Of a DNA stretch of 64,000 nucleotides, positions 3,001 to 55,439 are shown in pieces. Below the pieces are notes generated by a model. That model worked only from the letters and a program-made list of their open reading frames with translations. It was not told where the DNA came from and made no database searches. The position numbers were made by a program, and so were the translations under genes. Every line of letters starts with the position of its first letter. Position 1 is the stretch's first letter. The stretch lies in contig JAUPSS010000003.1 of NCBI GenBank assembly GCA_040285825.1, positions 496,001-560,000 of the forward strand, written 5' to 3'. Origin of the DNA: Eukaryota sp. TZLM1-RC. Lineage: Eukaryota; Protista; Metamonada: BaSk clade.

Positions 3001-6000
3001 AATTGATAATAAATGTGGAGTAATTGGTAGCTGATAGTATTGTGCCTATCGATGAAGATCTCGACCTAGAAGGCGATGAACTCAATGAAGAATTCAATGT
3101 TGAAGTCATTGCACCAGAATGACCATGACCGTTGATGATGGAAAAGGAAGCAGTGAGGGCTTGCAAAATAATGAGACAAATATCAGAAAACTTTTGACAC
3201 AAGCAATCTTGCCCTTCTTCACCTTCTTTTAAACTAAATGCTGAATTAAAAAACAAAGAAGAAGATGAAGGATTCCAGCGAACAATTCTCGGCAGAATAT
3301 CTACAGAAATAGTAAGTAAATCTCTTATAGAGGGTAAAACCAAATCTTGGCTGGTGCAAGTGGTTATGGAATCATAAAGAACTGATAAATACCTCTTGAA
3401 AAACAAATACTCAATGGATATTACAGAGTGATGAGGGACAATTCCTCGCAAGGAAAGTGAATTGAGAAATAAGGGAAACAGGCAAGGTTCTGACTGGTCA
3501 ACAATGCCAAAATCTTCAAGAATTTTTTTAAAAAACTTATAATCACCTAGGTTCAGGTCAAAGATGGTCAATGCCGATGATGGAAAGTCACACATCAACA
3601 CACAGTCAGAAACAAGGTCAAAAAGCAGCTGAAAAGTGTCAAAGCAATCAACATACAGAGCATCGGTACACGTGTTCGAATTCTTTATACAATCCAGTAA
3701 GCCAAAGAGCGTGCAACAGGTTGAAACAAGATACAAAAAGGGTTTAGACCCTGATTTTTTCCCGGCAATTCCTGATTCAATCAAACCCTTGACCTCACTT
3801 GACTGATTGTTCATTTTGATTGACGTCACGTGATCTTTACCAGTCAAGCAAGAAGCTGAACAAGCCAGTGTTAAAAACAAGTCAGGTATCCCTCCTAAAC
3901 CATCCCGAAGAGAGTGGGTAAAAGAACGAATTACTGGCAAAACTTTAATTAATTCTGATGAAAATCCGATAAATTCTGGTCTTAAAGACTTGACACCATT
4001 AAGTAAAGCCCCACAAACTGTGGTGAGACAGAAAGGATTTATGCTGTCTGATGTCACTAGTAGGGTAAGAACGTCGCGTAAGTATGTACAATTAACTGAA
4101 AAAGAAGAAAAAACACTGCTTAAATGGTTATAACCATTAATTGAATGGAATTTGGCAGAAAATTCTTTTTCGTGTAAAAGTAAATTAATCAAAGATATCA
4201 AACCTGGGAACAACGCTCCTGAATCAGGTAATAAAGCTACCAGGAGCTTCAAAGGGTGTAGAGATAGAAAATGTGGAATCAATTGCTTGAAATCTTCTAA
4301 ATGTTTTCTTATTACCTCTAACAATTGACGACCCAATAGAGATTGAGAATCATTATCAGAAGGTTGGTGCTCAGAACCACTCTCACATTCAGGAGAGCTT
4401 TCTGGTGAAGGGGACTGTCGAGAGTAATTCACAGGGAAAACAAATAGGTAACACGGGTGATTGGAAAGAGCACAACGAAAATACAGCGAGAGCATAATTG
4501 TTTCAGAGATCTTGGCCTTGAGATTTCTATCATTTGAAATGACCTGTTTCAAGCCTTCTACTGGGTGGTGTTTGAGCGCTCCTTTACGCAAAGTCTCTAC
4601 CAAATCATCGAAACATTCAAGCTTGTGGTAAACAAAATCACATAGGGCGCAACTGGAATCTTGCTCGTATTTACAGGTGCAGACAGCAATGGAGTCAAGA
4701 ATGGCTGAGATAGGGGAGATGAGGTCCAAGTCAATTACCTTGGTGGAGAAACAAATTCTAATGATGAAATCAACAAAGTTAATACTGAAAAGTCGTTTTC
4801 TATTAAAAATAAACAACCTGAAGCAACAATCACAAAACTGACTAGTTTTTAGGGTAAAATCTGTCTTATTTGACCGAAAAGACAAGACAGAAGAGCTTCT
4901 GCTTATAGAAGGAGAGGTGTTATTTGAACTAAATGATGACGTGACCGGTCTTGGTGAGTCAATGGGTGAACTGAGTCTATCAAGTCTATTATAAAGTGGA
5001 CTTCTGGAAGATTTTGCCGGAGATTTAGTCGAATAACGCGAAATAACTGGCAAGCAAGCAGCAATTGAAGAAAGAGCAGCCACCAAATCACTTGCTCTGG
5101 ATAGTTTCCTATTCCACAGCTCCCATGAAAAAATTATTCGAAGGTTTCCTTCTTCGTAAATCAATCCTGTAGATTGATTGCAATCACAAAGATAATCAAA
5201 AGTGATTGAAGACCCTAGAACAGACTTGATAAACGATGACCTTGGATTACTGGCTAGAGAAAGAAAAACTGAATGTAAGTGTCGAGAAAAAAACTCCAAA
5301 CGTAACCTAAAACTGCTCTGAGTTACCTTAAACAAAACATCTGCGGAAAGAGAATTAGGTATTGCACAACATTTGACAAAAGAATCAAGAAAATTATAAT
5401 CATACAAATGTGAAATCAAATCAAAATGATTGATTGGATTTTGATTGATTGATGGAGTAATCACATAATCAACTGATTGCTTACTGACTGTTCTTACTTC
5501 TGGGGCCTTGGTGACCTCTCCTGAAGGTAAAATCAATTCAGAAATACTCTTAAAATTAAAAACAAATAGAGGAGCCGAATTTGACTCAAATAAGAAATTG
5601 CAACTTCTTAAATTATTGAATTCCTCATCCAAAAAGACCCTATTTAAAACACTTGAGCTTGAATTGGCAACAGAAAACAAACCGATTCTGTTGCAGTAAT
5701 CTGGTCTGGTGGCACTAACAACACCATCTGAGCAGAGACTGAGAGGATGTGTAGTAGAAAGGGGAGAGGAGCACGTGATGACGTGTAAAAGGTCAATATT
5801 GAGGGGTTTATTGAACATTGTAGAAGAAAAAACATCAACAGCAAAATTACTTTTGCCCTGACCATCGTGATCTATTATTGACCGTATCACGTGATTATGA
5901 CCTGAAAAGGGGAAACTTATTGGAATTGATGAAATCAACTGTGTTCCAATGAATAAAGCCAGGTTATTGGGCTGGTGAATCACACTTACTAGACTATATT

Positions 6001-13875: not shown

Positions 13876-14886
13876 AGTTCCTTTTCCCATCCATTTCTTC
13901 CATCCTTTGTCAAGTTGTTTATCTTTTTTATTAAACTAACCTTGTAATTATTTCTTTTATTACTTTGAGCTGTTACTTCTCAGTTTTTCAGTGAATGAAT
14001 AAATTTGCGATTTATGTATGAATTTTAATAAGAAACCATCTAAACCTTTCATGCACATATAGTGTGTACCGCTGCTCTTACTATCAATTGACCCTACTAT
14101 CACTACTTGCATGTGGTGATACATTTAGAGTCTCCCTAACGTCTAACACAATGGCATGAATGGCATACTGAGAATTAGAAAAGCTTGTTAAATGAAATTT
14201 TTAAATAATGTTTTATTGAACTACATTACTTAACAAAATAAACTCAGAAGTAATGGTACTCAATTAATTGAACCAAGATTTGCTCTACAAAAGCTTAGTC
14301 TGTTTATTTTCTTGCCATTGAATGAAATTTACAATCATAAAGTTGATTTATTATAAATTACTTTCTGGTTTGACATTTAACTAGGGGGTGTTTTCAGTCA
14401 AAATAGACCTATTCGCTCCAACAAAATATCCAAGTTTGCTGAGGCAGAGAAGGCTTCTGAATGTTGATACTAAATTATCCTTGCAGTTTACCTTGATTAC
14501 TTAACCGTTGTTTACTTTGAAATCATGATTTCCCTTTTCCTTTTTTCAATAACAGTTTTTGTTTTAGTATAAATTATGTATAAGTTGTATGAATTTCAAT
14601 TAAACTAAGAACAAAATCTACATATGACAAAACAAAGAAGTCATTGATCTCAGTCTACTTAATCGCTCATCCATGCGAATAAGTAATGGTGAATGAAACA
14701 GAGCTAAATTCTATTCTTATATTCACAAAAATAAGCCGATCACCTCCGGGTGGTTGAGTTTAGCCTGGTAATTTAGGTTGAAGTGGTGGTAAGTGACATT
14801 CAAATGACATTTCCAAAAAGGAGTGCATTTCCAATGAAACCAATAGACAATTGCTTCGCTTTTTGGAAAATATGTGTAACTATTGA

Positions 14887-14969
14887 TTGAGATGGTTTCT
14901 GATGCTCTGTTTTCCTTTGAATCTCTCTTTCAGAGAGTTGCATTTAGTTGTTTTGTTTTGGGAGAGATG
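14887..14969 (+). mobile_element. Short 3'-terminal fragment of the CRE-like retrotransposon
   Basis: gatggtttctgatgct...gagagttgcat...gttttgggagagatg matches ~30650-30730. Confidence 0.75.
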
Positions 14970-14979
14970 CCAATATAAA

Positions 14980-16623
14980 AAACCATCAGAAAAAGGCGAG
15001 CTGATGTATTGAGCACACTGTTAAACCGTGTAAAAACACTTTTCAACAAGAATCCGCTGAGTCGACACAAATACGCTTTGATTGATAATGAAAATTTGAT
15101 GTTATATAAAAAGCTCAGTGATGAGGATGAATTAATTGTGGTCATTTCTGCAAGAGAACATTCCATCTCTTACTGTCAATCTACAAGATAGATTGTTGTA
15201 AAATTTGCTTCTTCTATTTACACTCGAGAACAGATTGAATTAAATCTTTGTTTTTGCGATCATGTAGAAAAGTCAACAAGCAGAAAAAAATAATTAATTT
15301 AATATGAATTTTCGTATTCCCTCTTATATCAGAACTGACAAGACAAGCTTATTGAACTTGTACTTTGCCGAATTCAAAAACATTCTAGGTAAAAAGTAGT
15401 CTTATCAATTTATTAATCAAGCTGCTGAATTGGTTTTATGGAAAACCTTTTTGAAAATGGACGAGATCAAAAACACGAAACTTTATTCAGAATATTCAAT
15501 GTACATCATGTCTAGCTTCAAGACTGATCGAGTAGCAGTAGCAGTTCATTCAATCTAGCATTGACTTGAAAAAATACAAAATAACTACAAAAGAATTCAA
15601 AGAAAAAAGAAAAATAAATTGATGACCCCAGCATTAATCCTTCTAAATTTCAAGATGTGGCTCTTGCTGCTGTTGATCCAGGGAAATCTGATCTACTCTA
15701 TTTTTCTGCCAATTTAGCCACTGGAATGACGCATTCAAAAAAACCTGAGAGAGATAAATATGTTATTTTGAGGTACACTCAAAATTAGAGAAAACTTGAT
15801 TCGAAAAGTTTCAAATTCAAAAGAATAAGAAACAGCATATGGAATGACACTCTTATCACAATAGGTAACTCTACTGGTAGAGTGATTGCTCTATCCAATT
15901 GTGAACTATCTGAAGAGCAACAACAAAGAATGGATTTAAACAGCAGTAAAATTAATCAAATGACTGAAAGAACAATTAGTTTATTAAGAGGGAAAGTACC
16001 TCAAGAAATCAAATATTACATTTATGGAGTATATTAAACAAAAGAATTTTGTGAATTGTATTGTTGGTGAGGTCTATCATCAAAAAAATATTTAGGAAAC
16101 TAAATGGTGGGCTGAGATTAATCGCACAAGATCTGAGGCAAAAATGATTCAGTGCTTCAAATAAGTTATTGGTGATACCAGCAAAGTAGTTATTGGAATC
16201 GGAGACTGGGACCAGCGAAAACACATGAAATTCAAAAAACCTACCAAAGGAAAAGATTTGAGAATTTAATTTAAAGGTTGGCCATAAGGTCTTTTTAATT
16301 GATGAGTTCCGAACCAGTTGCTGTTGTGTCAACTGTAAGAAAGCGGAGAAAACAGTTGAAATGCTCAGATGTTGTAGAAATTCCATGCCATAAAAAAAGG
16401 AACGAGATGTCTAATGGTCACGGGCTTACCATGTGTGAATCATGCGAAAGTTTGTGGAATAGAGATCGAGATGCTTCGCTGAATATGTTGGCAGTGATGG
16501 AAGCACATGTAAAAGGTGGAGATAGACCGGAATACCTGCAGAGAGCCGATGTTGTTGGAGGTTCAAAAAAATGGTATTAAGAAGAAAACTCCAAAACTCA
16601 GTCCCTCAGGTATAGAAAAGGAC
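14980..16623 (+). mobile_element. Fanzor1 family B copy 1, pseudogenised; all three RuvC acidic residues retained
   Basis: IPSYIRTDKTSLL; SFKTDRVAV; RuvC-I LAAVDPGKSDLLY (Asp 15675); LRYTQN; IGIGDW; RuvC-II FLIDEFRTSCCC (Glu 16304); CESC; RuvC-III WNRDRDASLNM (Asp 16464); GGDRPEYLQR. Several stops and frameshifts. Homologous to 35477-37010. Confidence 0.88.
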
Positions 16624-16640
16624 TGACAATATCTAAAAGA

Positions 16641-19600
16641 ATGACCACCCCTCAACCTTATGATGGCCATGTTGAACCTCATGTCGACTCCTACAACTTC
16701 TTTTTGAATAAAGCTCTACATCTTATTCCGAAACTTCTTACTCCATTAGAATTTGAACTTACAAGTTATTCCAACATTAAGTTAAGGATAGATTCCATCA
16801 ACATTCATGAACCTAGTAGACCTGCATCTTCCGATGCCCTAACCTCCTCACTCTTCCCCCGTGATGCCCGTGAAGGAGGAGTTACTTATGGAGGTATTCT
16901 AGAGGTAGACCTCACCTACCAAATCCAAGATCTTCCACCAGAACGCATCTCCCGAAGACTCGGTGTCTGGCCTATCATGCTGCGGTCCTCTCTTTGTCAC
17001 CTATCCAAGCTTGATTCGAAAGCCCTCTGTAAAGCGAAAGAAACCCTCCATGAACCTGGTGGTTATTTTATCATCAACGGTCTGGAGAGACTGATCCGTT
17101 TACTTATTCTTCCCCGTCGCCATTTCCCTCTTGCAATGACTCGCTCCTCCTGGGTCAACAGGGGTCCTCGGTACACTGCTTACGGAGTGTCGATGAGGTG
17201 CGTCTTAGAAGATGAGTCTTCATTGACAAATGTGCTTCATTACCTAGATGATGGTACTATTACTTTGAGATTCAATATTAATAGGGCTGAGTACTTTGTT
17301 TCATTGGCAATTATTCTTCGTGCTTTAATACAGTTGTCAGATCGCAAAATTTTCGACATTGCAGTAAATAGAGCTCATCCAAATGATACTGATTTTGTTA
17401 TTGAACGAATGGAACTCTTGCTCCAAGGGAACCAAAATCTTTCACTTTATAACTCCCAAGATGCCAAAGCTTTTCTAGGCAGACGGTTCAGAACAGTTCT
17501 GGAACTCCCAAAGTCTTGGAAGGACGTTGAGGTTGGTGGTTATGTATTGGAGAATTTCATTTTGGTTCATTTGGGTTCATTTGTTGAAAAGTTTTCTATT
17601 TTGATGGAGATGTTGCGAAAACTGTATGCACTTGTCAATGGAACAATTCTGCCGGATAATGGTGACGCAACTTCTTTTCACGAATTACTCTTACCTGGAC
17701 ACCTTGCAAGTATGGTCTTAAGAGAGTCATTAATCAATTGGATGAAGGGAATAAGAAGAGCTATCGAAAGAGAGGAGAATTTACACCCGGAAACCTTCAC
17801 AATTGATCACGTCACCATTAAAAAATGCGTTGACCGTGCTCCCGGTGACTTTGGTAGAAAATTTGAATATTTATTGTCTACTGGTAACCTCAGATCAGAC
17901 ACTGGATTGGATTTAATGCAACAGGCAGGTTTTTCAATTGTTGCTGAAAGACTTAATCAATTGAGATTTCTTTCCCATTTCAGGTCAGTACATAGAGGAC
18001 AATTCTTTACTGAAATGAAGACAACCTCTGTTAGGAAGCTTTTACCAGAATCTTGGGGTTTTCTCTGCCCCGTTCACACTCCTGATGGCTCTCCCTGTGG
18101 GCTTTTGTTACATTTGGCTATAGACTGTAAGGTATCTACTGAACGTGTCAAACGAGATGTCATGATCCCTTTTCTCATTGGTTTGGGAATGATGACTAAT
18201 GATGTGCTGACAGTTTTGCCCCCTAAAAGACCTTGGTTGCCTGTTGTTCTGGATGGTTCTCATGTTGGATTTGTGCAAGAATCACTTATGATGGACTTTA
18301 CAACCAATTTAAGAAGATTAAAAGTTTCGAAATTAATTCCTGAAACTACAGAAATCGCCTGTGTTACCCCAGATACCCTCAAAGTTGACCCAGGTGTTTA
18401 TCTTTTCACCACTCCCTCTAGATTTGTTCGAAAAGTTTATAATAATAATGTGAATAATTATGAATATTTGGGTTCGTTTGAACAGGCATATCTGTCAGTC
18501 GGTTTGGAACCTGGAGCAAATCATTCTCACACTGAACTTAAAAACACCTCTTTTCTGTCCTTTGTTGCAAGACTCACTCCCTTTTCTGATTTCAACCAGT
18601 CACCACGTAACATGTACCAGTGTCAAATGGCCAAGCAGTCGATGGCCACTCCAGTATTGAACTACCTCCACAGGGTTGATAATAAACTTTATAGACTGCT
18701 TTTCCCTGCTAGACCCTTGGTTCGTACAAAGGATCATGATTCTTATTCTCTTTACGACTATCCTGGTGGGTTTAATGCAGTAGTTGCTGTTTTAGCCCAC
18801 ACAGGTTATTCAATGGAAGATGCTTGCATTATCAATGAATCAAGCTACAATAGGGGTCTAGCACACGGGTCGGTGTACACAACAATGGAAATCGATCTTG
18901 GAGCTTTTGATTCTCGTCCTAATGAAGTACGTCATGTTTTTTCCAACGTTCCAATAGCTGCCAGTGGTGCATTAGGGTCAACTTTACCTCAACTAACCGA
19001 AGATGGAAGGTTCATAGCAGATCTAGAAGCTGATGGCATTATTTCTTCAGGGGTCAAGCTTACACGTGGCAGTGTGTTGGCAGTTTCTGTGGATACTCTA
19101 TCAGGCAAACCAAAGATACATCGATACAAAAAAGATGAAGATTGCATTGTTGATTCAGTCACTCTTGTAGGAGCCCTTGGTCATTCCAATGCCACGACTG
19201 GGGGATCTGGCCAGTCAAAGAAGAACGCATCGTCAATGTTCAGTGGTCCTTTAAGAAAGATTACTCTGAAGCTTCGGTACTCCCGTAATCCAATGGTTGG
19301 GGATAAGTTTTCCTCTAGGCATGGACAAAAGGGTGTTACTTCTCTACTATGGCCTCAAGAAGATATGCCCTTCACTGCTGATGGGATCTCCCCTGACATT
19401 ATCATCAATCCCCATGCTTTTCCATCAAGAATGACCATTGGTATGTTGATTGAGTCAATGGCTGGTAAGAGTGGTTGCTTGCATGGTGTTTATCAGGACG
19501 GAACACCTTTCCAGTTTTCGGAAGATCAATCGGCTATTGATTTTTTTGGAAACCAACTTGCAGCCCTAGGATATGAATTTTATGGACAAGAAACAATGTA

Positions 19601-27349: not shown

Positions 27350-27373
27350 GATGTTGAAGCAAATCCTGGTCCC
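27350..27373 (+). other. 2A/StopGo-like ribosomal skipping motif DVEANPGP
   Basis: GAT GTT GAA GCA AAT CCT GGT CCC matches D[V/I]ExNPGP. It is in frame with ATG 27212 and with ORF 27482-27970, with no stop between the motif and the exonuclease. Confidence 0.8.
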
Positions 27374-29149
27374 AGAAAGAGAAGATCTAATTTTAAATCA
27401 ACTCCTCCATCAAGAATTATAGGAAATGCAATTTTTGACCAACAAACATCAGGGCGTAAGCGAAAAAAACAACAAAAAGCATTGAACCAAGAAATTTGTA
27501 TTGAGAATACAATGTTGAATATCGAGAACAGGAAGATTTTGACAAAAAAACCATTGAATCCGAGTATGGTCAAAAGAATTGAGCCAAGTCTTAGTGGATT
27601 CAAGCCTGATCCTTTGATTCAATTCAAATCAATGACCCCAATTCAAAATCTTCCCACTGTTATGTGCTTTGATCTTGAAACCTATCGTGATGGTCATCTT
27701 TATCAAAATCATGATGGCCAATTTCTCCCTCCTGACGAGATTATCAACAAAAGGAGAAAAGAGGGTGCAAATCTCTTGAAAAAGAATACTGATGAGCAAA
27801 TGGGTGAGTGGATTTCTGATCAAAAAGTGTTTTTAATTTCCATTGTTATTGGTAAGTTTGATCGTCATAATTTCGTTTTGGAGAGTAAATGTTCACTTAT
27901 ATTGAGAATTAGTCCTCAAATCAGATTACCAGACATTGATATGGATGTTCATCCAGAAATAATTCTCTGACGAAAAAACCTTGCTTCGTAGGTTCTTAAA
28001 CATTATTGGTGATCTTCAACCCCCTTTCTTTCTAAATCACAACTTAATGCAGTTTGATTTACAGGTTTTGAAAAATCGATTAAACTATTTTGATTTACCA
28101 TTTCCCACTGTTCTAGATGACACAGCAATTGATGTACTCAATCAACTTTCACCAAGATGAAGGGAAGTTGTTAGCAGGGAAAATGGCTTTTTTCTTCTAG
28201 ATACTTTGGTTTTTGCCAAAAAATTTATCAAAATACCCTACTGACATGGATTAGGCAATTTGGCATATAAAATGATATATGAAAAGAAAATCAAACCTCA
28301 TCAGGAATTTTCATATATTTTGCCAATTGATTGTTTAGCTACTTCTCCTCTTATACAAAATTCGATTCAATATGGGCGTCATGATTGTATCCTTTGTCTG
28401 AAACTTTTCGTGCTGTTTCAGAAAGACAAATTTATTTTATCATCTTATAAAACCATTCGAGCAACCGTCAACTCAATGGTTAAACATTCAAATGTGATAT
28501 TCAAATTGAGAGAAACTGCTGTAAAATTTCAACAGTTACGAATTCATACTACATGTTGCTTGATGCTGTATTTACAGTCCCGATTTGAACATACTTTACT
28601 ATTACCACGAATTTCTGTCAAATTATATGAATCATTAATGGCCAGAATTCGTTATATTTCAGCTGAGTATTATGGGCAAGAAATGGTGAAACCAAAAAGT
28701 GTATTTCCAGAGGATTTCAAAGACTTTGTTTATGGTGAAGGAGTTTATACTTTAAGAACTACCTTTGAGCATCAAAAGTTAAACAAAACATTGAGTTAGC
28801 TTGATCACTTAAGACACAAGCCTGAACAGTTTCCACGATTTCCAACTGATTGCTTCAGTAGACCACCTCAGTATATGGCCCCATTAATGTTTCCCAAATT
28901 TGAGAATAATTAGAAATTAAATTGTGAAAAACATATCAATTGTTTTATTAATGTGTATTTTGACAAACCAGATTTGGAAAGTGTGTTTTCAGAAATGCGA
29001 AAGCTGGGTGGATACTCAACGTCATTATCTACAATTACTTCACTATATAGATTTAGGCTTCGTCAATTCAAAAACTTGTTTTTAGTTTATGATAGAGATT
29101 GCTTGAGTTTTTTGTTTCATCATCCTGAAAATATTTCAGACCTTCTGAA

Positions 29150-30785
29150 AACAAATTTTCAGAACTTGCCGATTCATATGAAAATATTGGGCTTCATCTT
29201 AATGCCAGCAAATGCCTTCTGATTGGCTCTTCTGCTCAAGACCTCGTGATAAACGATTCTATTGTCCCTTTTACTAATTATAGTAGTGATGCTTTTAAGT
29301 TCCTTGGTTGTTGGTTAGGAAATGTGCCTCAAATTCAGAATGAATTGCAAGTTATTTTGGAAAAAATGAAAATTGAACTTGATTCAATTTCTTCTTTAGA
29401 TATAGAAAAGCATATTAAATTTTTCATGCTTAAAATTTGCTACACTGGGAGAATAACCCACATTTTGAGATCTTGTGCTCCTTCCATAGCATTAGATTTT
29501 TGTCGTTCATTCAATTCATTGAGAACAGAATTTTTTGCTGATTTATTGGATGTAGAACCAGGAATGTTGAAAAGTCACTTATTTTCTTCAGCAAATTTGG
29601 GGGGTATTGGATTTACTAAATCTTCAATTTTGTGTCAATCAGCATTCTTGGGTGGTGGCAAAAATTTTATTTATGAATTTTCTCGTAGATTTCCTGATGA
29701 TTCTCATCTGTTAGTCCCCAATTGTAGTCCCTATTTGTATGAGTTATCTTGTGAACTTGAAAAATTACCACCACAAATTTGGACCAAATGTTTTCCTCAA
29801 TCAATTCAAGAAATTCCAAACCGATCTCTATTTAATTTACAGTTTTGCTGTAAAAAGCTTCAACAAAAATTGTTCAAGATTTTTGACAGCTTGGATTTTG
29901 ATGTTAGACTTGGCTTGGCCAAGAAAAAGAATCCCGCTTTTGCAAATCTTTTACAAGATATGTGTGACAGTACTTCTTCTGCCTTAGTAACAACAATTCC
30001 ACAAGTTTATGGTACTCTCTTATCCGATTCTGCTTGGACTCTGAATATGAGATTTCGTTCCTTTATCTGGCCTGATAATTTACCTCATATTTTAATTTGT
30101 AAATGTTCTCGAGAAATTACAACTACTCATTTGTTAAATTGTAAACATTTTATTACTTTTAGAAGCAAGGTTCATGATGCTGTAAGAGACCAGTTATATT
30201 GTATGTGTAAATCTCATAGAATTGAATCCTTCTTGGAACCTCTGTTGTCAAATTTGTTTGATGCTGAAAATGATTTTCATAAGAATAATAGAGGTGATGT
30301 CATATTACCTGGATTAGATGGAAGCTTCATTTTATTGGATGTAATGTCTGTTGATCCTTGTAATGCCTCAAATGAAAGGCTTGTTACTTCTGAAATTCAT
30401 AATCCCCTTTCAAATGCTGAAAATTTTAAATTCAAAAAATACAATGAACCTTTGTCCAAATTGGCCAGTCTACAGCATGCAAAATACAATTTGTATCCAT
30501 TTGTATTTTCCCTTTTTGGTTCACTTGCACCAACTGCTTTACGTTTTTTGGATGATTTTGAAATGATTGTAAAGAGAAGAACTGGCAGAAATTTCAACAG
30601 ATTGTTTTGGCAAAATAGAATTGTGTTTTCTATTTTTAAGGGGATGTTGAAGATGGTTTCTGATGCTTTGCTTTCTCTTGGATCTCACTATGAGAGAGTT
30701 GCATCTAGTGTTTTTGTTTTGGGAGAGATGGATTTTTTAGATGTTGATTTATAGGTTTAGAATAAAATTAAATTTAACAAAAAAA
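29150..30785 (+). mobile_element. 5'-truncated CRE-like non-LTR retrotransposon with poly(A) tail and 12-bp TSD
   Basis: Intact ORF 29246-30754 (FKFLGCWLG, GGIG, CKC...HLLNC, RSKVHD, E-P, RGD, LDV, KKY, PFVFSLFG). AATAAA at 30761 and an A-run at 30779-30786. TSD AGACCTTCTGAA at 29138-29149 and 30786-30797. The empty site is visible in copy 1 (~8570-8590). Confidence 0.95.
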
Positions 30786-32287
30786 AGACCTTCTGAATGA
30801 TGAATTTTTCGATTTATGTGAACAGCATGATATAAGAAATAATGAACTCACAGACATATTCGAAGGTCTTATTGAGCCATTTACTTGTCAAATTGAGAAT
30901 TTGGTCACTTACCAGAATTTAGTTGATAACATATTTCCAGTGGATACACATTTTCTTGCAGATGCTGTTGAAAAAGATCCTCAAATATTCCTAACACCAG
31001 CAATTACAATTGCCCAATATATCTCCAGTAGAGAGAAAAAACCTTATCATATTTCTCCTGTTTCAACCACTGTATGTCCAGGATATTTTCCTATTGATAC
31101 AAGAACACTATGGAGAATTGTTAAACAAACATTGATGGATGATTTATCATCTACACAGACGCTGAAAATGTCCAAAACATTAGCCCAAATTACGAAATTC
31201 AAACCACCTGAGCAATTTGACTTTTGGTCTAATATTCTCGATTTAAACCAACCAATGTTCAAACAGAAGAACTATGAATTCAACAACATTATACACACAG
31301 ATGGATTTAATATTGCAGTAGAATTTGTTCGTCAGGATTTACAAGGTCAGAAATGTAAGCCAGACAACAAGGCTAGTATTTCGGATTTATATATTGATGA
31401 TGTTGATGTTGATACTTTACTACAATATTTATTTATATATTTTTATTTATTGTATTTTGGGAGTAAAAAGACTGATCAAGAACTAGCCATGGTTCCTCAG
31501 AATGAAACTGAACAGCAAAGAAATAGTCGGGTGATGAATCAAGACAAGAAGTACAAATGGTTAAGAATGACTCAGATGTCCTGGTCTTGGAAAAGTAGGA
31601 TGAATGAAAAACAAAAACGATGGGCGACAAGGTATACTGAGGTAGGTTACGACAGGAACCAAATGATAGAGTCTTACGAAAGGACAATTGAAGATGCAAA
31701 CATGAAGTTATCCGCGTTTGCTGCAAATTCAGCAACTTTTATAGATTTTTCCAACTATGTGGTTGCCAAACTTCGGCAAGTTTTTTTTGACAATTGACTT
31801 TTATAGTCTTGACTTGCTTGTGGAGCATTCATAAAATGCAAGCTTTTATTCACAAGCAAAAGACTTAAAGTTGGTTGTTAAAAAGCCTTGTTCAGCAGTT
31901 TGGCAATCCAAAAGACACTTTAATACTAATGGGTGATTGTGGTAAAAAAGGTTTTAAGAATTTGAAACATCATAGGCCTACTCGAGGCATTGGATGGATT
32001 CAATTTCTGAAAAGGAATGGATTTGAAGTATTGATGATTAATGAAGCTTTCACTTCAGCAAAATGTCCTGTTTGTTTTGAAAAGGTTGCTACGTTTTTGA
32101 GAGTAACAAATCCCAGATTCTATAGAAGAGAAAAGACTCCTGTTACTACATGCCATGGTTTATTAGCTTGTAATAGTCAGAGTTGCAAACTCAGTAACAA
32201 AGGCTCAACAAAGCTGTTCAATAGAAATAAGCTGGCTTGTCTGAATATGTTTGCAATTGCCGAAGCCAGAATGAGTGGTAATGAAAG

Positions 32288-32384
32288 GCCTCAGTATCTG
32301 TGTAGTAGATAGTTTTTGTAATTATTCCACACGAAAATTGATCGTGTATTTATGGGAATTTCCCACAAAGAATAATATCTTACA
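32288..32384 (+). ncRNA. Candidate Fanzor family A omega-RNA (scaffold to ~32364 plus flank-derived guide)
   Basis: Conserved with 45103-45197. Stems TATCTG/TAGATA, ACACG/CGTGT and GGGAA/TTCCC. Similarity ends abruptly after GGGAATTTCCC. Confidence 0.6.
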
Positions 32385-33197: not shown

Positions 33198-35441
33198 TTA
33201 TTTAAAAAAAGTTAGTAAGTTGTCAAAGTTCAATTCACTTAAACTGGCCATATAAGCCTGAATATTATTTCGTGTGTCGTGACCTTTCAGTCTCCAAAAG
33301 TCAATAAAAAGATCTGTTAAAATTCCCTTAAAAATCTCCAGTATCTTGGGTTGTTCGTTGTAAATCCTTTCAATCTCTTCAGCAGACGCCAAGATATCTG
33401 CAAATTCTGAGGGGAAAAAATTCTTAATTTCATTTTCATTCAAGGATATTTCCTCAAGACCCTTTAAAATAGAATACTTTTGGGCAATTTCTAAAATAGA
33501 TGAATGTTTAGTGCTGAATTGTTTAAAAAACTCCTCGATACTTTGAATTGAAACACTAACATCTGGTTTAATTAAAACCTTAGCTCGTGTTGCTTGAATT
33601 GACAAAACTTCCTTAATAATTGATAACGCGCTGATATTATCAGAAAAGGCTGTGATCTTATTGTCATAAACTTCCAATTTCAAGGGACTTCCAGAGAAAG
33701 TAGAAACTGTGGAAATCACACTAGATTTGGTATCCACCTGATCGGTCATAAATAATTGGGAAATCCAACGACCAGCCGTGGAGGAAGAAAACTGACCAGT
33801 AAAAGTGATTTGCGAATGAAACCTGGAATTCATTACAGATTTGCTGTCTACTGATTGATGTAGAGTTAGAGGTTTCAACGAAATTTTAATCTTTTGGGCA
33901 ACGCGAGACCCTTGCTCTTCAGACTCCTTTGATTTAGCATTTCCTGTGTTAATGATGCCAACAACCTCAACATCGCCGCCTAGGCCCTCAATAGATCTAA
34001 ATAGGAGCTCAAAGTGTCTAGAGTTTTGGACTTTTGGCGTAATGACAACTGTCACCAAGTTCTTTTGGTTTGATTCACCAAAACCTCCAGACAAAATACT
34101 GAAATTACATTCTGTCGACGAATCAAACTGCCGATCGACAGCAACTTGACCCTTTCCTATTTGGGAATAGTTAAACAAAGACATTGGAACCAAGCTAGAC
34201 AATAACACCTTGTCAACAGGAAATTCAGAAGTAAAAGTTAGTTTGAAACAAGAAAGTGAGGTAATGGGGGTCAAGACAGCGTTGAAAATTGATTGATTAG
34301 AAGAGATCATTGACAAGTCAGAACTAGCAGACTCAAGCTTTTTCAATTTTTTGTTCAAATCAGAAATTTCCACTTGTAAATTGCTCACCATTTTATCTAC
34401 ATTAGTGATTTGCTGATGATCCTTACTAGCTGTCAGCGAAATAATTCGACCAGAAACAGAGATACCGAGCAAAGAATTAAAACCATCTAAGAATTTTCCA
34501 CTCGTTAAAGAAACTAGTTTGTCCTCCAACAAAAGACTGAAAGAATGGTAAAATTCATAACTATCGTTGGTTTCACTAAAGTTGGCAAATAATTCAACTA
34601 AACCTGAATCACGAGAGATTGTGAGGATCTGAACTTGACTGTCCATAAAGGGAAGGTAATTAACATTGATTGCAACAATTTTGGATGAATCTTTTGAAAC
34701 TACCTCTGATAGAAATTCAATTTCACCATCAAAAACTCGAAGTATAACAAGGTTTCCGTTACTCAACCCAACGGCTACATCAACGTGATCTGAGCGCTCA
34801 AAATTAGAATCAATCAAATTTGATTGACCTGTATTGATCAAACTCATACAGTTTCCCGTACCTTCCAGTTCATAACTACTAACCACATCATCACCACAGA
34901 TTAACCTTAGAGAACTGTCAGCAAGGCAGGCAAGACAGAGTGAATAGGGAGAAGAACTTTTGAGAGCTACCAAAGGAAGAAAGGAGGTTATAGAATCTGG
35001 ACAAAGCAAGAAGGCTTCTTCTTCGCATGATTTGAAAAGAGAATAACTATTTGAAGTGGTGGTGTGAATAAAATCGTCTTCAACAAAGGCAAAGGTGATT
35101 GGTTCAGTTGATGAAGTTTCAAACATAAACTGCTCGCTCCCTTTTTTATTGAACCCAATGATGGAATTTCCACATGTGACAAATAGCCCGTAAACACCAG
35201 AGTTCGACTTACCACCGAGTGAAAGAGATGTAGGGGTGGATGGAAGAGTAACTTCGAATGAAGAGGTAAACATGTCTTTTTTAAAGGAGACTGCTTTAAG
35301 CGTGCTTCCATCAATAAAACAAAACTTTTGATTTTTCTTGCCCTTGTTGGCTTTTTCGGAAGGAAGGGGGAGTAAGGTGGACACAGATCCAAGTGAGTAT
35401 GTGATAGAGAGAATGTGTTGATGGTCTAGTAACAGTTCCAT
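33198..35441 (-). CDS. BBS7: Bardet-Biedl syndrome 7 protein (BBSome)
   Basis: 747 aa. IIGFNKKGSEQFMFET, FRSIEG, SDNISALSIIKEVLS, GILTDLFIDFWRLKG. Confidence 0.9.
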   Translation of the reverse strand: MELLLDHQHILSITYSLGSVSTLLPLPSEKANKGKKNQKFCFIDGSTLKAVSFKKDMFTSSFEVTLPSTPTSLSLGGKSNSGVYGLFVTCGNSIIGFNKKGSEQFMFETSSTEPITFAFVEDDFIHTTTSNSYSLFKSCEEEAFLLCPDSITSFLPLVALKSSSPYSLCLACLADSSLRLICGDDVVSSYELEGTGNCMSLINTGQSNLIDSNFERSDHVDVAVGLSNGNLVILRVFDGEIEFLSEVVSKDSSKIVAINVNYLPFMDSQVQILTISRDSGLVELFANFSETNDSYEFYHSFSLLLEDKLVSLTSGKFLDGFNSLLGISVSGRIISLTASKDHQQITNVDKMVSNLQVEISDLNKKLKKLESASSDLSMISSNQSIFNAVLTPITSLSCFKLTFTSEFPVDKVLLSSLVPMSLFNYSQIGKGQVAVDRQFDSSTECNFSILSGGFGESNQKNLVTVVITPKVQNSRHFELLFRSIEGLGGDVEVVGIINTGNAKSKESEEQGSRVAQKIKISLKPLTLHQSVDSKSVMNSRFHSQITFTGQFSSSTAGRWISQLFMTDQVDTKSSVISTVSTFSGSPLKLEVYDNKITAFSDNISALSIIKEVLSIQATRAKVLIKPDVSVSIQSIEEFFKQFSTKHSSILEIAQKYSILKGLEEISLNENEIKNFFPSEFADILASAEEIERIYNEQPKILEIFKGILTDLFIDFWRLKGHDTRNNIQAYMASLSELNFDNLLTFFK

Positions 35442-35476
35442 TTGCTACAGATGATGTCTATAACAATGAAATAAGT

Positions 35477-37660
35477 GTCCTTTTTACACCAATGTAGAGA
35501 GAATGAGTTTTTGAGAAGTGGAAGATTTTCTCCTTGATACCTTTTTCTTTGATCCTTTGTCAACCTTAATTCTCTGCAGGTATTCCGGTCTATCTCCACC
35601 TTTTACATGTGCTTCCATCACTGCCAACATATTCAGCGAAGCATCTCGTTCTCTAAACTTTCGCATGATTTACACATGGTAAGCCCTTGACCATTAGACA
35701 TCTCGTTCCTTTTTTTATGGCATGGAATTTCTACAACATTTCAGCATTTCAACTGTTTTTTCCGCTTTCCTACAGTTGAAACAACAACAACTGGTTCGGA
35801 ACTCATTAAGTAAAAAGACCTTATTACGAGCCTTTTCAAATTAAATTCTCAAACCTTTTCCTTTGGTAGGTTCTTTGAATTTCATGTGTTTTCGTTGTTC
35901 CCAGTCTCCGATTCCAATAACTACTTGGATGGGATCACCAATTACAGATTTGAATCTCTGAGTCATCTTCGCCTCAGATCTTGTGCGATTAATCTCAGCC
36001 CACCATCTTGGTTTCCTAAATCTTTTTTGATGATAGACTTCACCAATGGTACTATTCACAAAAATCTTAAAATAATTCTTTTGTTTATTATATGCCATAA
36101 ATCTATCAAATCGACAGCTTTGGAAATAGAATTGGGATACAGTTGCTTCCCATTCTGCTACAGATTTAGTTTTTTGTTCATTATTTCTCAAATTTAATGA
36201 GTTATCAAACCGGTTTGTACCTCAAAATAACATATTTATCTCTCTCAGGTTTTTTTGAATGCGTCATTCCAGTGGCTAAATTGGCAGAAACATAGAGTAG
36301 ATCATATTTAGCTAAATCAGCAGTAGCAAGGGTCATATCTTGAAAATCAGAAGGAACTAATGCTGGGGTCTTCAATTTGTTTTTCCTTTTTTTTTTAATT
36401 TTTTTGCAGTTACTTTGTATTTTTTCAAGTACATTCTAGATTGCCTAAACTGCTACTGCTACTCGATCAGTCTTGATGCTTGACATGATTTACATTGAAT
36501 ATTCTGAATAAAGTTTCGTGTTTTTGATCTCGTCCATTTTCAAAAAGGTATTCCATAAAACCAATTCAGCAGCTTGATTAATAGATTGATAAGACTACCT
36601 TTTACCTAGAATGTTCTTGAAATCGGCAAATTACATGTCCAACAAACTTGTCTTGTCAGTTCTGATACAGGAGGGAATACAAGAATTCATATTCTATCAA
36701 TTATTTTTTTCTGCTTGTTGATTTTTCTACAGCATCACAAAAACAAAGATTTAGTTTAATCTGTTCTCGAGTAAAAATAGGAAACACAGAAATTGCAACA
36801 ATGTTTCTTGTAGATTGACAGTAAGAGATGGAATGTTCTCTTGCAGAAATCACAATTAATTCATCCTCATCACTGAGCTTTTTACCCAACATCAAAGTTT
36901 CAATATCAATTACAGGATATCTGTATTGAGTCAGTTGATTAGCATTGAAAAGTGTTTTCACACGTTTCAAAGATGTGCTCATTACATCAGCTCGCCTATT
37001 TCTGATGGTGTTTTGCAAGGAGGAACATTTTTTTGTCTTAAATATTTTTCGTTTATCGTCAACACAGCTATGAAAACATATTTTGAGTTGAATAAGTTGT
37101 TTAATTTGGACTGAATCAATTGAATTGAACTGATTTGACAAAAACAGATTGATCATTCTTTTTGCAAACAGTATTGTGAATATTCCACATTCATATAAAT
37201 TGGATTGATTAAATTGAAATAAATTTTGACTGAAATTGATGCCAAGTATTTCAAAAATTATTGAATTAATTCTTTGATGTTGTTCTTCATTATGACGAAG
37301 ACTATCAAAAAGAAAAACATTTATTGTTCTGCATTTGATCCAGAATGCATCAAGTACCCAATGTTGACCAATGGTAAATTGCTCGTCAACAGATGCATTC
37401 AAATTTGAATGATGAAATGCATCATTATAGGGTAGAAGAATCAAAGTGTTTTCTTCGTTGCCAGAAGTGATCAATTGTGAGCAAAAATCATTTTGAACAA
37501 ATCCCCTAACAAATAATAAAGCTGATGCGATGGACCAAACAAGTATTTTGTGATGTGACAGTGGAGTTGATGACTGATTGATAAAGTTGTTGATCGAATC
37601 AGTGATTTGTTCATCATCTAACCAGCTGTCTTCGACATCATCACTTTGTTTTCCTCCACC
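35477..37660 (-). mobile_element. Fanzor1 family B copy 2 with N-terminal Ulp1/C48 protease domain, pseudogenised
   Basis: WLDDEQI (~37624), QHWVL (His 37363), FDSL (Asp 37306) and QSNLYECG (Cys 37189) lie in one open frame that continues into sequence shared with copy B1. C-terminus IGIGDWEQRKHMKFKEPTKGKGLR, NEFRTSCCC, GGDRPEYLQR. Confidence 0.85.
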
Positions 37661-39237
37661 TGATATATTAATATTTGTGAAATATATATTTATTATTAAA
37701 AGGATAAATTTATATAATTTTGATTTAAAAATTTATAAAATGATTTATCAAAAAGATCGTCAAACTCTCCAGAATAAGCACAAAACGAATTGCCCCCTTC
37801 CATAAACAGGCTGTGGGTGGAAACACTGATGTATGAAACACAAACAGCTTCCAGGTTCGTGCCCCAGACACGACCTACAAATTCATATATAATGTGTTTT
37901 CTTGAAGGAATCATAAAATGTTTATTAATCAAAATTGTTGAACAATTAATTAAAAAACAATTTATAAAAACTTCATGATAAACTATTTAGACAAATTGAT
38001 CCTTCTCAACTAAAATAGAGGAAGAGTCAATCTGACTAAGTAGTATATTTTCTACCAAATGATAGGAATGGTCTTTGAGAGGAAGTTCCTTTGCTACCTT
38101 TGCGGATATAATTGTACTCAGGTGTATAAAGGTACAAAAATACCTATTTAATAGTGTCATAATGGAAAAATGATGTTTAGAGCCACCGATCTATGAGTGG
38201 CACATCCATTGTGATCCGAGCCCATATTTGTCCACTACAAACTAAAAACGGAATTAATTGGGAAATATCAAAAATGGGTGAAATTATTTTGAAAATCATT
38301 TATCAGGACTGCAACACATAGTGATGAATTTCATTTCAAGATTCACCATCTGAAAGGATCAACGGCTGTACATCAACTTGAAACTGGCATGGATTGTCCT
38401 ACATGTTTACTCCTTTAGATGATCTATAGACTGAATTTCCAAATTCAAATCTAAAGTCTAGTAGAAGTGACATAGACTTGTTTGTAAATGAATGTGAATT
38501 TTGTTCAGAATCAATTAAGTAATAATTTGAAACAATTGTGATGGTGATGGAGAAGACAAGTAAAGGTTATTCATTCAAGTTATTACACAAACCTCAAGAA
38601 CAATTTACTGCAACTATTGAATTGGACTATTGTAATGATTCTAGTGTTGATGGTCTATTGGATCAAGTAATTGACCATTACAGGTGAAGAAGTGAAGGAT
38701 ACTTCTAAAATAGATGGAAAATGAAAACAAAGCAAGTCGATCAGTAATAGTGTTGTAGTCACCCACAACGTTGGTTGTGGGTGAATGGTTGTGGGTGACA
38801 TCATTTTGATTGGAAGAAAGTGACTCATCATTGATCATTACTAGTGTTGACTGAAGTAATATTTAAACAACTCCTTTACCACTTTTGTACAAAGATAAAT
38901 GACAGTAAATATCGGTAGGGTCTAGCTTGTTGACCAGCTCAAACTTTTGTAAGAAGACCCAATTAGTTTAAAACTGTATTGTCCCAAAAATGATAAATTC
39001 AGTGAATATAGGCTATTTAGTTTCCATAGTGTCTGAGAATGTGACTAGAGGCTTAAAATAACAAATGAACCTATTCAAGTATAGCTAACAAAAAAACAAA
39101 TTTCAAAAAGTTTATTGAAAAAGCTTCACCTAATTCAATTCTACCATGATGAATGAATAGTAATTTAAAGAATTAACACATAAATTTTGATTAAGCTACA
39201 ATCAAAAAGCAAAAATCACAATCAACCTGAGAAATAC

Positions 39238-40218
39238 TTACTTGTTCATGGAAAGAACTTCTTCAACATACACAAGAGCAGTGTCGACGCACTTATCAAA
39301 CAAAGAATCCTTAAAGGTAGTTTGAACGAGTTCTGACAATGTCTTTGAATTATTTTCATCAGAAAACACCAATTCAAAAAGTGACATGTGGTGCTTAATT
39401 CGACTACCAAAGCTTGAAACACAATTCTCAGAACGCTTAAAGTTCCAAATCTGACATTCCTCACTGTATTTGTTGAAAAAAGAACATAGGCAGTGGTGTT
39501 GGCATAAAGAGCAGCTGAGGGGAGCAACTCTAATGGACAAAGAGCCCTGGATTCTGCTTGATATGGAGTCGAAAGCATTACGTATGGTGTTGACGTAATT
39601 CAGATCAGACAAAACCCCAAGGAATTCCCCATATAAGTGTTTAAAGAAAGGAACTAGTTTTGCTAACAACAAGGCTATATGCGAGGAATCTTCCAGGGAC
39701 TGCAGTAATTCACTATTGAATAGAATGGTATTTAGAGTGTTATTCAATCCAAAAAAGGGAGTATCGATAGCAATCAGTAGTTTAGGTGTGAAATCAGCCC
39801 TTTTAGACAGTTCCCCGAGGACCAATCCACCACATGAATGGCTGACGTAATGTGAAGACAGAAGAGAATGGTGCTTGATGTGTGAATAGATTAAGTCCAC
39901 AATGTTTGTGAAAGAACGCTGCTTGCAACTGTAATCAATAATGTATACCGACCTTCCCTGTGATTGTAACAACCACGGCAAGCTATGGAATGTACTGTGG
40001 ATGGGAGGAATGCCATTCTCTTTTGAAACAGTTACTGGCGGTGACTGGGTGTTATCTATCGCATCATTGCATTGAAAACCGTGAACAAAGACGACACATG
40101 ATGCGGGGTCAAGCAATCTAAGAAGTTCTGTACGAGCAGAAGGTGTTGAGTTAATAAGCGAAGCCGTAGATGATAAGTGATTAACAGTTTCGGCAGCTTT
40201 AGATAGAAATCTCAACAT
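39238..40218 (-). CDS. Alpha/beta-hydrolase (DUF676/PGAP1-like putative lipase)
   Basis: VVFVHG, nucleophile elbow SHSCGG, IDTPFFG. Confidence 0.75.
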   Translation of the reverse strand: MLRFLSKAAETVNHLSSTASLINSTPSARTELLRLLDPASCVVFVHGFQCNDAIDNTQSPPVTVSKENGIPPIHSTFHSLPWLLQSQGRSVYIIDYSCKQRSFTNIVDLIYSHIKHHSLLSSHYVSHSCGGLVLGELSKRADFTPKLLIAIDTPFFGLNNTLNTILFNSELLQSLEDSSHIALLLAKLVPFFKHLYGEFLGVLSDLNYVNTIRNAFDSISSRIQGSLSIRVAPLSCSLCQHHCLCSFFNKYSEECQIWNFKRSENCVSSFGSRIKHHMSLFELVFSDENNSKTLSELVQTTFKDSLFDKCVDTALVYVEEVLSMNK

Positions 40219-54750: not shown

Positions 54751-55439
54751 TTTGGAATATAAACAAAATGTTGTTGTCAAAACATTAATTTTGACGCTAC
54801 TGAACAATCTTTCTACATTATTGCAATGGGCTGAAAATATTGAAGCAATAAAGAAGCTTCATGACAAATCTCGGTGACCAAAGGAAGGTCAGTCCGAATT
54901 TTTGCACTGCTGCAGGGGTGAGCAGCGAGTTAAGTGCACAAGACCGAGTGAATACACGTGACACAGAGGGGGTGTCTGCCATGTAGTGAGACTAAAGAGC
55001 TCATCTATCAAATTTTACTATTGTCACCCAATTTTCGATTTCTGGCCTCACTTTTCCCTCACTTCAAAAACTAGGTTCTGGATATGTCACAACGGAACCT
55101 TGAATATACCTCCTTGTGCAACAAGGGTTACTCTCTCAATACTCTCTACTATTTTGGTCTCTTGTGTGGTTTTTATGGATTGTCCTTTTCTCATTCATTC
55201 TTATTTCCCTCATTTACCTTCTTTGCCGAGCCTTAGGATTCCCTCTGTACTCTTTCTGAGTGTTTTTCTACTCATTTTTGATTCTGTTTTACGTTATACT
55301 TGCATTTGGTTCCCTTAAAACAATTGTTGGACTCGTCCTAAAACCCACCACTCTCTTCCTATATACCCATTCCTCTCCGTCATCAGCTCCCTCACAATCC
55401 AACTTTTCTCTTCTTTTAGACTCTGTTAAAATGGTTGAT

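Follow-up and report, generated by a model that had tools for sequence, protein, structure and literature searches.

Fanzor and TnpB nucleases have been described as compact stand-alone proteins riding in other transposons. Among the Fanzor papers searched, neither the founding and recent ones nor a 2026 review mentions a natural protease or exonuclease fusion; in genome engineering, according to reviews, exonucleases are deliberately fused to Cas and Fanzor enzymes. Ulp1 (Peptidase_C48) domains are already known from DNA transposons. They occur in Ginger1 transposases and Mutator-like elements, where their function is unknown and a role in a ubiquitin/SUMO-dependent repair response has been proposed (PMC2836005). 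In those elements the domain is a bona fide pfam02902 member and is located C-terminal to the DDE transposase (PMC2836005). The present analysis concerns the window, i.e. the whole analyzed stretch of 64,000 nucleotides (nt) from contig JAUPSS010000003.1 of assembly GCA_040285825.1, in which the minus-strand segment 38102-35442 is in all likelihood a dead copy, B2, of a Fanzor1 mobile-element family (family B) of the free-living flagellate Skoliomonas strain TZLM1-RC. An original prediction, made from the letters of the window, had placed a Fanzor1 fused to an Ulp1-like protease at 35477-37660; this range does lie inside B2, but the element reaches further, to the coordinates given above.

Judged from the sequences of its copies, the protease-like domain belongs to the element family itself and lies in its reading frame. 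As in Ginger1 and Mutator-like elements, a clan CE Ulp1-like domain is carried in the main open reading frame (ORF) of a mobile element (PMC2836005), whereas the domain of family B is N-terminal to an RNA-guided nuclease, scores below the Pfam threshold and shares its ORF with no transposase. The ancestral protein would have consisted of a leader of ~190 residues, the sequence LSGG↓G, a clan CE protease, a basic linker resembling a nuclear localization signal (NLS), a PolB-type exonuclease with motifs ExoI-III, and Fanzor1, in this order, the nuclease forming only the C-terminal third of a multi-enzyme protein of ~1,475 residues. Compared with the known Fanzor1 proteins, family B has about 560 extra N-terminal residues (about 700 with the whole leader) comprising the protease and the exonuclease, and the region of RuvC-II, zinc ribbon and RuvC-III aligns with Fanzor1 of Parasitella parasitica (Fz1, 9cf0) and Spizellomyces punctatus (Fz1, 8gkh). 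What is new here, as read from the DNA, is the protease-exonuclease-Fanzor architecture of family B, a census of nine copies in which the 5' end is defined, a consensus frame that is open, and evidence of selection on the protease.

The copies of family B and their common architecture

Nine copies were found in the assembly, each adjoining different host genes. Six further loci were reached from the leader ORF and from P0001, an annotated protein fragment on the same contig which carries the Pfam domain DNA_pol_B_exo1 (PF03104); loci L001-L007 hold copies B3-B9, besides B1 and B2 of the window. B1 (14977-16640, plus strand) is truncated at the 5' end within the linker and has no protease. B2 is also 5'-truncated, and a deletion of ~1.3 kb is common to both. 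Copy B3 (L001) is 5'-truncated as well, beginning about 90 nt further upstream than B1, and B5 (L002) is truncated within the exonuclease. The longest copy, B4 (L003), contains a retroelement insertion; B6 (L004) is nearly full length; B7 (L005) has both ends and most of the protease; and in B8 (L006) and B9 (L007) the protease is deleted. All nine are dead and carry stops, frameshifts or deletions.

A protease found next to B2 only had been named in advance as a result that would speak against a fusion. This was not the case, as the protease is present, in the same frame, in four of the nine copies (B2, L003, L004 and L005). The whole open frame of B2 is matched by L003 8822-9844 with 71.6% amino acid identity, all in the same frame and interrupted by one stop private to L003, and the DNA homology between the two (83%) extends 420 nt further upstream, to 38102. 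At the nucleotide level B2 is 83% identical to L003 8394-9858 and 14537-15973.

The frame of B2 also enters sequence common to B1, as had been noted, the homology starting at 37014 and 14977, respectively, with 87% nucleotide identity. In detail, B2 37014-36216 corresponds to window 14977-15777, and B2 36105-35526 to 16017-16588, the identity being about 87%. The homology begins abruptly in the open frame, within the linker, upstream of which B1 has unrelated sequence and a stop. Since the truncations of L001 and B1 fall at different points of the linker, the junction of protease, linker and exonuclease is ancestral and B1 merely truncated. The complementary deletions of the two copies were confirmed, 242 nt kept by B1 being missing in B2 and 113 nt kept by B2 being missing in B1. 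So was the retention in B1 of the RuvC-I Asp, RuvC-II Glu and RuvC-III Asp, though these lie in three different broken frames. Many stops and frameshifts are common to B1 and B2, indicating that their shared ancestor was already defective.

For a test of frame continuity the nine copies were aligned block-wise after removal of obvious retroelement insertions, and their simple majority sequence, 4,465 nt long, was taken as the consensus. In it, a single open frame of 1,323 codons (nt 461-4429) begins with the protease, continues with the PolB-type exonuclease and includes all three RuvC motifs, so that the single ORF from protease to RuvC-III expected of a consensus was indeed obtained. Single junctions are open in B2, in P0001 and in a 340-codon ORF of L002. 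A conserved stop between protease and Fanzor, for example at 36701, had been considered as evidence against the fusion, but no conserved stop was found. The stop at 36701 arose at the junction of the deletion confined to B1 and B2 and does not recur as a conserved feature elsewhere.

The fusion of protease and Fanzor is, however, not direct as had been supposed, because a PolB-type 3'-5' exonuclease domain, mostly deleted in both window copies, sits between the two. What had been taken for the Fanzor1 N-terminus consists of a basic, NLS-like linker (KRK..KTKK .. RNRR; 36908-37060, minus strand), common to L001 9002-9181 and L003, followed by the ExoI motif of this exonuclease. The ExoI sequence DIE of B2 is located at 36899-36907, after a 48-nt deletion, and reads FDIE in L003 and L001. 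ExoII (GFNILKFD) and ExoIII (YCLRD) are present in the longer copies, in which the frame continues directly into the N-terminal region of Fanzor (consensus positions: ExoI 316, ExoII 423, ExoIII 541). On the L003 ORF, PF03104 scored 26.3 bits, above its cut-off of 23, and this score together with the motifs ExoI-III assigns the domain to the PF03104 family. B2 keeps ExoI alone of these motifs, in an N-terminal stub (36701-36907, minus strand) that is homologous to P0001 and ends in the stop at 36701-36703, next to the deletion junction at 36688-36698. The ~1.3 kb deleted from B1 and B2 correspond to consensus codons 388-835, that is, to ExoII, ExoIII and the N-terminal region of Fanzor. An early match to ExoIII inside B2 proved spurious, the region in question being Fanzor sequence downstream of the deletion.

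The C-terminal Fanzor1 part of B2 (35526-36688, minus strand) is broken. Its motifs ATADLAK (RuvC-I, Asp at 36316-36318), LLNEFRTS plus zinc ribbon (RuvC-II, Glu at 35802-35804) and RERDASLN (RuvC-III, Arg-Asp at 35643-35648) lie in three frames with stops, and its 384 codons have suffered 4 stops, about 7 frameshifts and the 242-nt deletion. The equivalent ORF of L004 is intact and matched PDB entries 9cf0 (PpFz1) with E=4e-11 and 8gkh with E=4e-6, as well as PF07282 with 28.4 bits against a cut-off of 26.3. The arrangement of RuvC-I Asp, RuvC-II Glu, C4 zinc ribbon and RuvC-III Arg-Asp is that of Fanzor1 at the family level (consensus positions: RuvC-I 959, RuvC-II 1207, zinc ribbon 1212/1250, RuvC-III 1260). 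The consensus also satisfies the Fanzor/TnpB motif of Bao-Jurka, D-X(125-275)-TS-XX-C4-X(5-50)-RD (PMC3627910), by D959, TS1210-1211, CxxC..CxxC and RD1259-1260.

B2 itself encodes no functional protein. It is 5'-truncated, internally deleted and frameshifted, and has lost ~190 nt of 5' untranslated region (UTR) and about the first 60 codons. The proposal of an RNA-guided deSUMOylase/deNEDDylase-nuclease encoded here thus fails, as no such working protein can be made from a dead copy.

Identity of the protease and selection on it

The motifs WLDDEQI, GQHWVL, LFDSL and QSNLYECG, on which the proposal of a protease was founded, were found as described: they lie in one minus-strand frame, in the order and with the spacing of a clan CE His-Asp-Cys protease. 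All four are held by the open frame 37681-36704 (326 codons), in which no ATG precedes the catalytic Cys. The domain itself (37061-37651, minus strand) has neither stop nor frameshift in B2 and contains Trp at 37622-37624, His at 37361-37363, Asp at 37304-37306, Gln at 37205-37207 and Cys at 37187-37189, corresponding to W61, H148, D167, Q200 and C206 of the consensus frame. His and Asp are retained in all four protease-bearing copies and Cys in three of them. In the L003 copy the domain matched PF02902 with 18.0-19.2 bits (E=0.0011-0.0027) and PF22102 (ElaD/SseL-like) with 19.3 bits (E=0.0011; cut-off 27). Both matches cover the His-Asp-Cys segment, where the residues His, Asp, Gln and Cys fall into register, and the Pfam match, with the ordered Trp-His-Asp-Gln-Cys in family-like spacing, extends over positions 94-204 of the 217 in the model. 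Of the PDB sequences, that of the deubiquitinase SseL matched best (E=0.16-0.34), its catalytic His and Cys aligning with those of the domain. SseL/ElaD (PF22102; PDB 5ubw) was thus the best PDB and joint-best Pfam match, although the context differs from that of family B, SseL/ElaD being a secreted bacterial protein. Among language-model neighbours, 28 of the 30 nearest clusters were Peptidase_C48 (score 0.95). On these grounds the domain is very probably a clan CE protease, of the Ulp1, SENP8 or another subfamily. When the window and the seven loci were scanned for further triads of clan CE type, only the family B proteases were found.

Several results weigh against this assignment. The protease of B2 gave no match to Peptidase_C48 in Pfam at E<=1, nor any match in Pfam, NCBIfam or the PDB sequences, and the best copy, L003, remained below the PF02902 gathering threshold of 20.7 bits. 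The profile check proposed for Peptidase_C48 therefore had a divided outcome, with 19.2 instead of 20.7 bits for the best copy and nothing for B2, but with the triad in register. A phmmer search of the 326-residue ORF against 1.84 billion representatives found no protease relative and only the exonuclease fragment P0001, and a profile search of a word-indexed database with a two-copy protease alignment gave no match at E<=10. The AlphaFold2 models were of low confidence, with a predicted local distance difference test (pLDDT) score of 37.6 for one sequence and 32.2 for the two-sequence alignment. Since the protease has no homologue in these large protein searches, it is not a host SENP gene captured recently.

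The weak matches, the lack of homologues and the low pLDDT could also be explained by a degenerate pseudo-enzyme, or by an unrelated fold mimicking the triad. This explanation is unlikely, as two independent clan CE models reached E=0.0011 with the catalytic residues in register, the language-model neighbours were nearly all C48, and the catalytic residues have been kept across decayed copies. It is further opposed by the pairwise ratios of nonsynonymous to synonymous substitution (dN/dS), which are well below 1. For the protease they were 0.37-0.65, several pairs being significantly below 1 (e.g. B7-B2, p=0.001); the N-terminal portion of Fanzor (0.36-0.72) and its RuvC portion (0.31-0.67) gave values in the same range. 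Few segments of the element are as well conserved as the protease core, whose mean pairwise identity is 0.91. The protease was thus under constraint while the family was active, and the past purifying selection on it is equal to that on the nuclease.

The leader and alternatives to a single protein

The sole frame break left in the consensus is situated between the protease and a leader ORF of 179 codons, which starts with ATG (MSDAPPGP...) and had no match in Pfam or in the atlas. The break lies in T/A homopolymer runs. One half of the stretch between leader and protease is read through by L004, L005 and B2, and the other half by L003; since the copies bridge the break in complementary halves, the ancestor most likely had, downstream of a 5' UTR of ~190 nt, an undivided ORF of about 1,475 codons. 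In B2 the leader remnant (37696-38102, minus strand) contains no recognized domain, is interrupted by a single internal stop and is frameshifted ahead of the protease; its amino acid identity to leader residues 62-178 of L003 is 67.5%. Three points count against the single ORF. It is a reconstruction, as none of the nine copies is intact; the consensus has a depth of only 4 in the protease region, where ties were settled by a fixed priority order; and the frame between leader and protease depends on tiling across homopolymer indels. As a side observation, the start of the leader, MSDAPPGP, resembles a 2A tail (NPG↓P), yet an in-frame stop is located 11 codons upstream. The sequence may be left over from an earlier polyprotein of greater length.

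The remaining frame break could mean that leader and protease were made apart from the exonuclease-Fanzor protein, by an internal start, reinitiation or a programmed frameshift. A precedent for two products is family A, which has a 2A peptide ahead of its exonuclease. In family B, by contrast, the consensus is without NPGP and no stop is common to the copies between protease and exonuclease: the junction is open over the 326 codons of B2, L003 has its one private stop, and the consensus stays open for all of its 1,323 codons. A two-product element is therefore an improbable alternative to the single polyprotein.

Family A (window 27350-32312) has a canonical 2A sequence, DVEANPGP, at 27350, directly before the basic cluster, which is followed by the exonuclease and Fanzor. 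The order of basic cluster, PolB-type exonuclease (FDLET / FDIE) and Fanzor is the same as in family B, with 2A in the place of the C-terminus of the protease. In a single comparison the two families aligned collinearly over the junction of ExoIII and Fanzor (E=1e-4; 20% of 117 residues identical). Between their C-termini the identity is 36%, whereas the overall sequences are barely alignable. The original prediction had the two families acquire their N-terminal enzymes independently; since they agree in module order and align collinearly, this is unlikely.

The contrast in B2 between the protease-linker-ExoI region, with no stop and no true frameshift in about 330 codons, and the Fanzor part, with 4 stops and 7 frameshifts in 384 codons, raises the question of whether the clean protease frame has been domesticated as a host gene. 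The frame has no ATG ahead of the catalytic Cys, its leader is truncated and frameshifted, and it ends at the deletion scar; in L004 no such contrast of protease and Fanzor was seen. Domestication is thus very unlikely, and the contrast in B2 may be chance.

An insertion of B2 beside or into an unrelated protease gene, with an accidentally open junction, might have been suspected from the lack of a protease in B1 and the abrupt start of the B1/B2 homology at 37014, but is refuted by the same protease, junction and frame in L003, L004 and L005 beside different host genes, and by L001 reaching about 90 nt past the breakpoint of B1.

Possible functions, 3' tails and secondary insertions

While the family was active, the protease would have been an active enzyme taken into the nucleus together with the nuclease. 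The reading we favor, though tentatively, is that the protease was an isopeptidase of the SUMO/NEDD8/ubiquitin type which, perhaps once it had released itself from the leader at LSGG↓G, worked on chromatin or repair proteins of the host where the DNA was cut. Self-processing alone is the runner-up and is possible but somewhat less probable. Cleavage sites of the adenain type have the form (M/I/L)xGG-x. In the consensus frame of 1,323 codons LSGGG is the sole site of the [M/I/L]xGG type, located 10 residues before the Trp motif; in B2 this candidate clan CE cleavage site reads ISGGG (37652-37666, minus strand). Against cleavage at this site, the middle Gly of GGG is mutated in three of the four copies compared. 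Adenain and its relatives, which process polyproteins or precursors in DNA viruses and Polinton/Maverick elements, share the clan CE triad with family B, and LSGG↓G fits their type of site. Unlike these relatives, family B has no capsid or other viral genes, only one site in its ORF and no detectable sequence similarity to them. A search of the family B consensus for the 2A sequence NPGP was negative.

Both added enzymes, the exonuclease and the ubiquitin-like (Ubl)-type protease, are of a kind that could affect the repair of double-strand breaks. A natural exonuclease fusion, selected along with the protease, suggests what the element needs for spreading, and family B supplies testable parts for this, though every copy seen is dead. 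An autonomous RNA-guided homing element could be imagined in which the polyprotein is cut at LSGG↓G by its own clan CE protease, enters the nucleus through the basic linker, cuts host DNA at gene start codons by Fanzor1, resects the break with the fused proofreading-type exonuclease, which would favor copying of the element, and removes SUMO, NEDD8 or ubiquitin from chromatin or repair factors there, a self-contained machine for cutting, chewing and reprogramming repair. That family B was such an element is unlikely.

All nine copies end with the same conserved tail (...GGACACTTATTTCATTGTTATAGACA..ATCT..), followed by a few variable bases ahead of an ATG. In eight of the nine this ATG, or in the case of L002 another one 11 nt further on, is the start codon of an annotated host gene on the same strand. 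The tails are found at 35439-35525 and 16560-16643 in the window, and at L001 19601-19684, L002 14014-14097, L003 15897-15980, L004 12050-12135, L005 9162-9245, L006 11376-11459 and L007 10922-11005. In B2 the non-coding tail (35442-35525, minus strand) runs up to the ATG (35439-35441) of the BBS7 gene downstream (33198-35441, minus strand; Pfam BBS7 domains), and B1 ends at the ATG (16641) of an RNA polymerase I subunit gene. The other neighbor of B2 is an alpha/beta-hydrolase-like ORF (39238-40218).

With the 3' ends fixed, the 5' truncation points were compared against the full 5' ends in L003-L007. Four copies are truncated at differing points (window 14977 and 38102, L001 9002, L002 9882), a pattern suggestive of copying that begins at the 3' end and frequently breaks off before completion. 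L005, which retains both ends and part of the protease, resembles a miniature derivative. An 81-nt segment of the window (54967-55045, minus strand) is 83% identical to the 5' UTR and start codon of family B (L003 8176-8256) and may have come from this or a related family as an isolated 5' fragment.

Family B copies have also been hit by fragments of CRE-like non-LTR retroelements (lacking long terminal repeats, LTRs), at positions differing from copy to copy. Insertions were located at L003 10781-14127, L001 9260-9965 and 11653-18524, and L002 11102-12650; L001 also contains an LTR retrotransposon with gag-pol genes at 14606-18389. Other Fanzor-like ORFs, which carry a TNB domain, were seen at L003 4083-5996, L004 13524-14474 and L007 3778-4467, all on the minus strand. 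They sit directly upstream of host genes on the same strand (IFT46 in L003, a WD40 gene in L004), and the ORF at L004 13524-14474 is 70% identical to the C-terminal part of family B.

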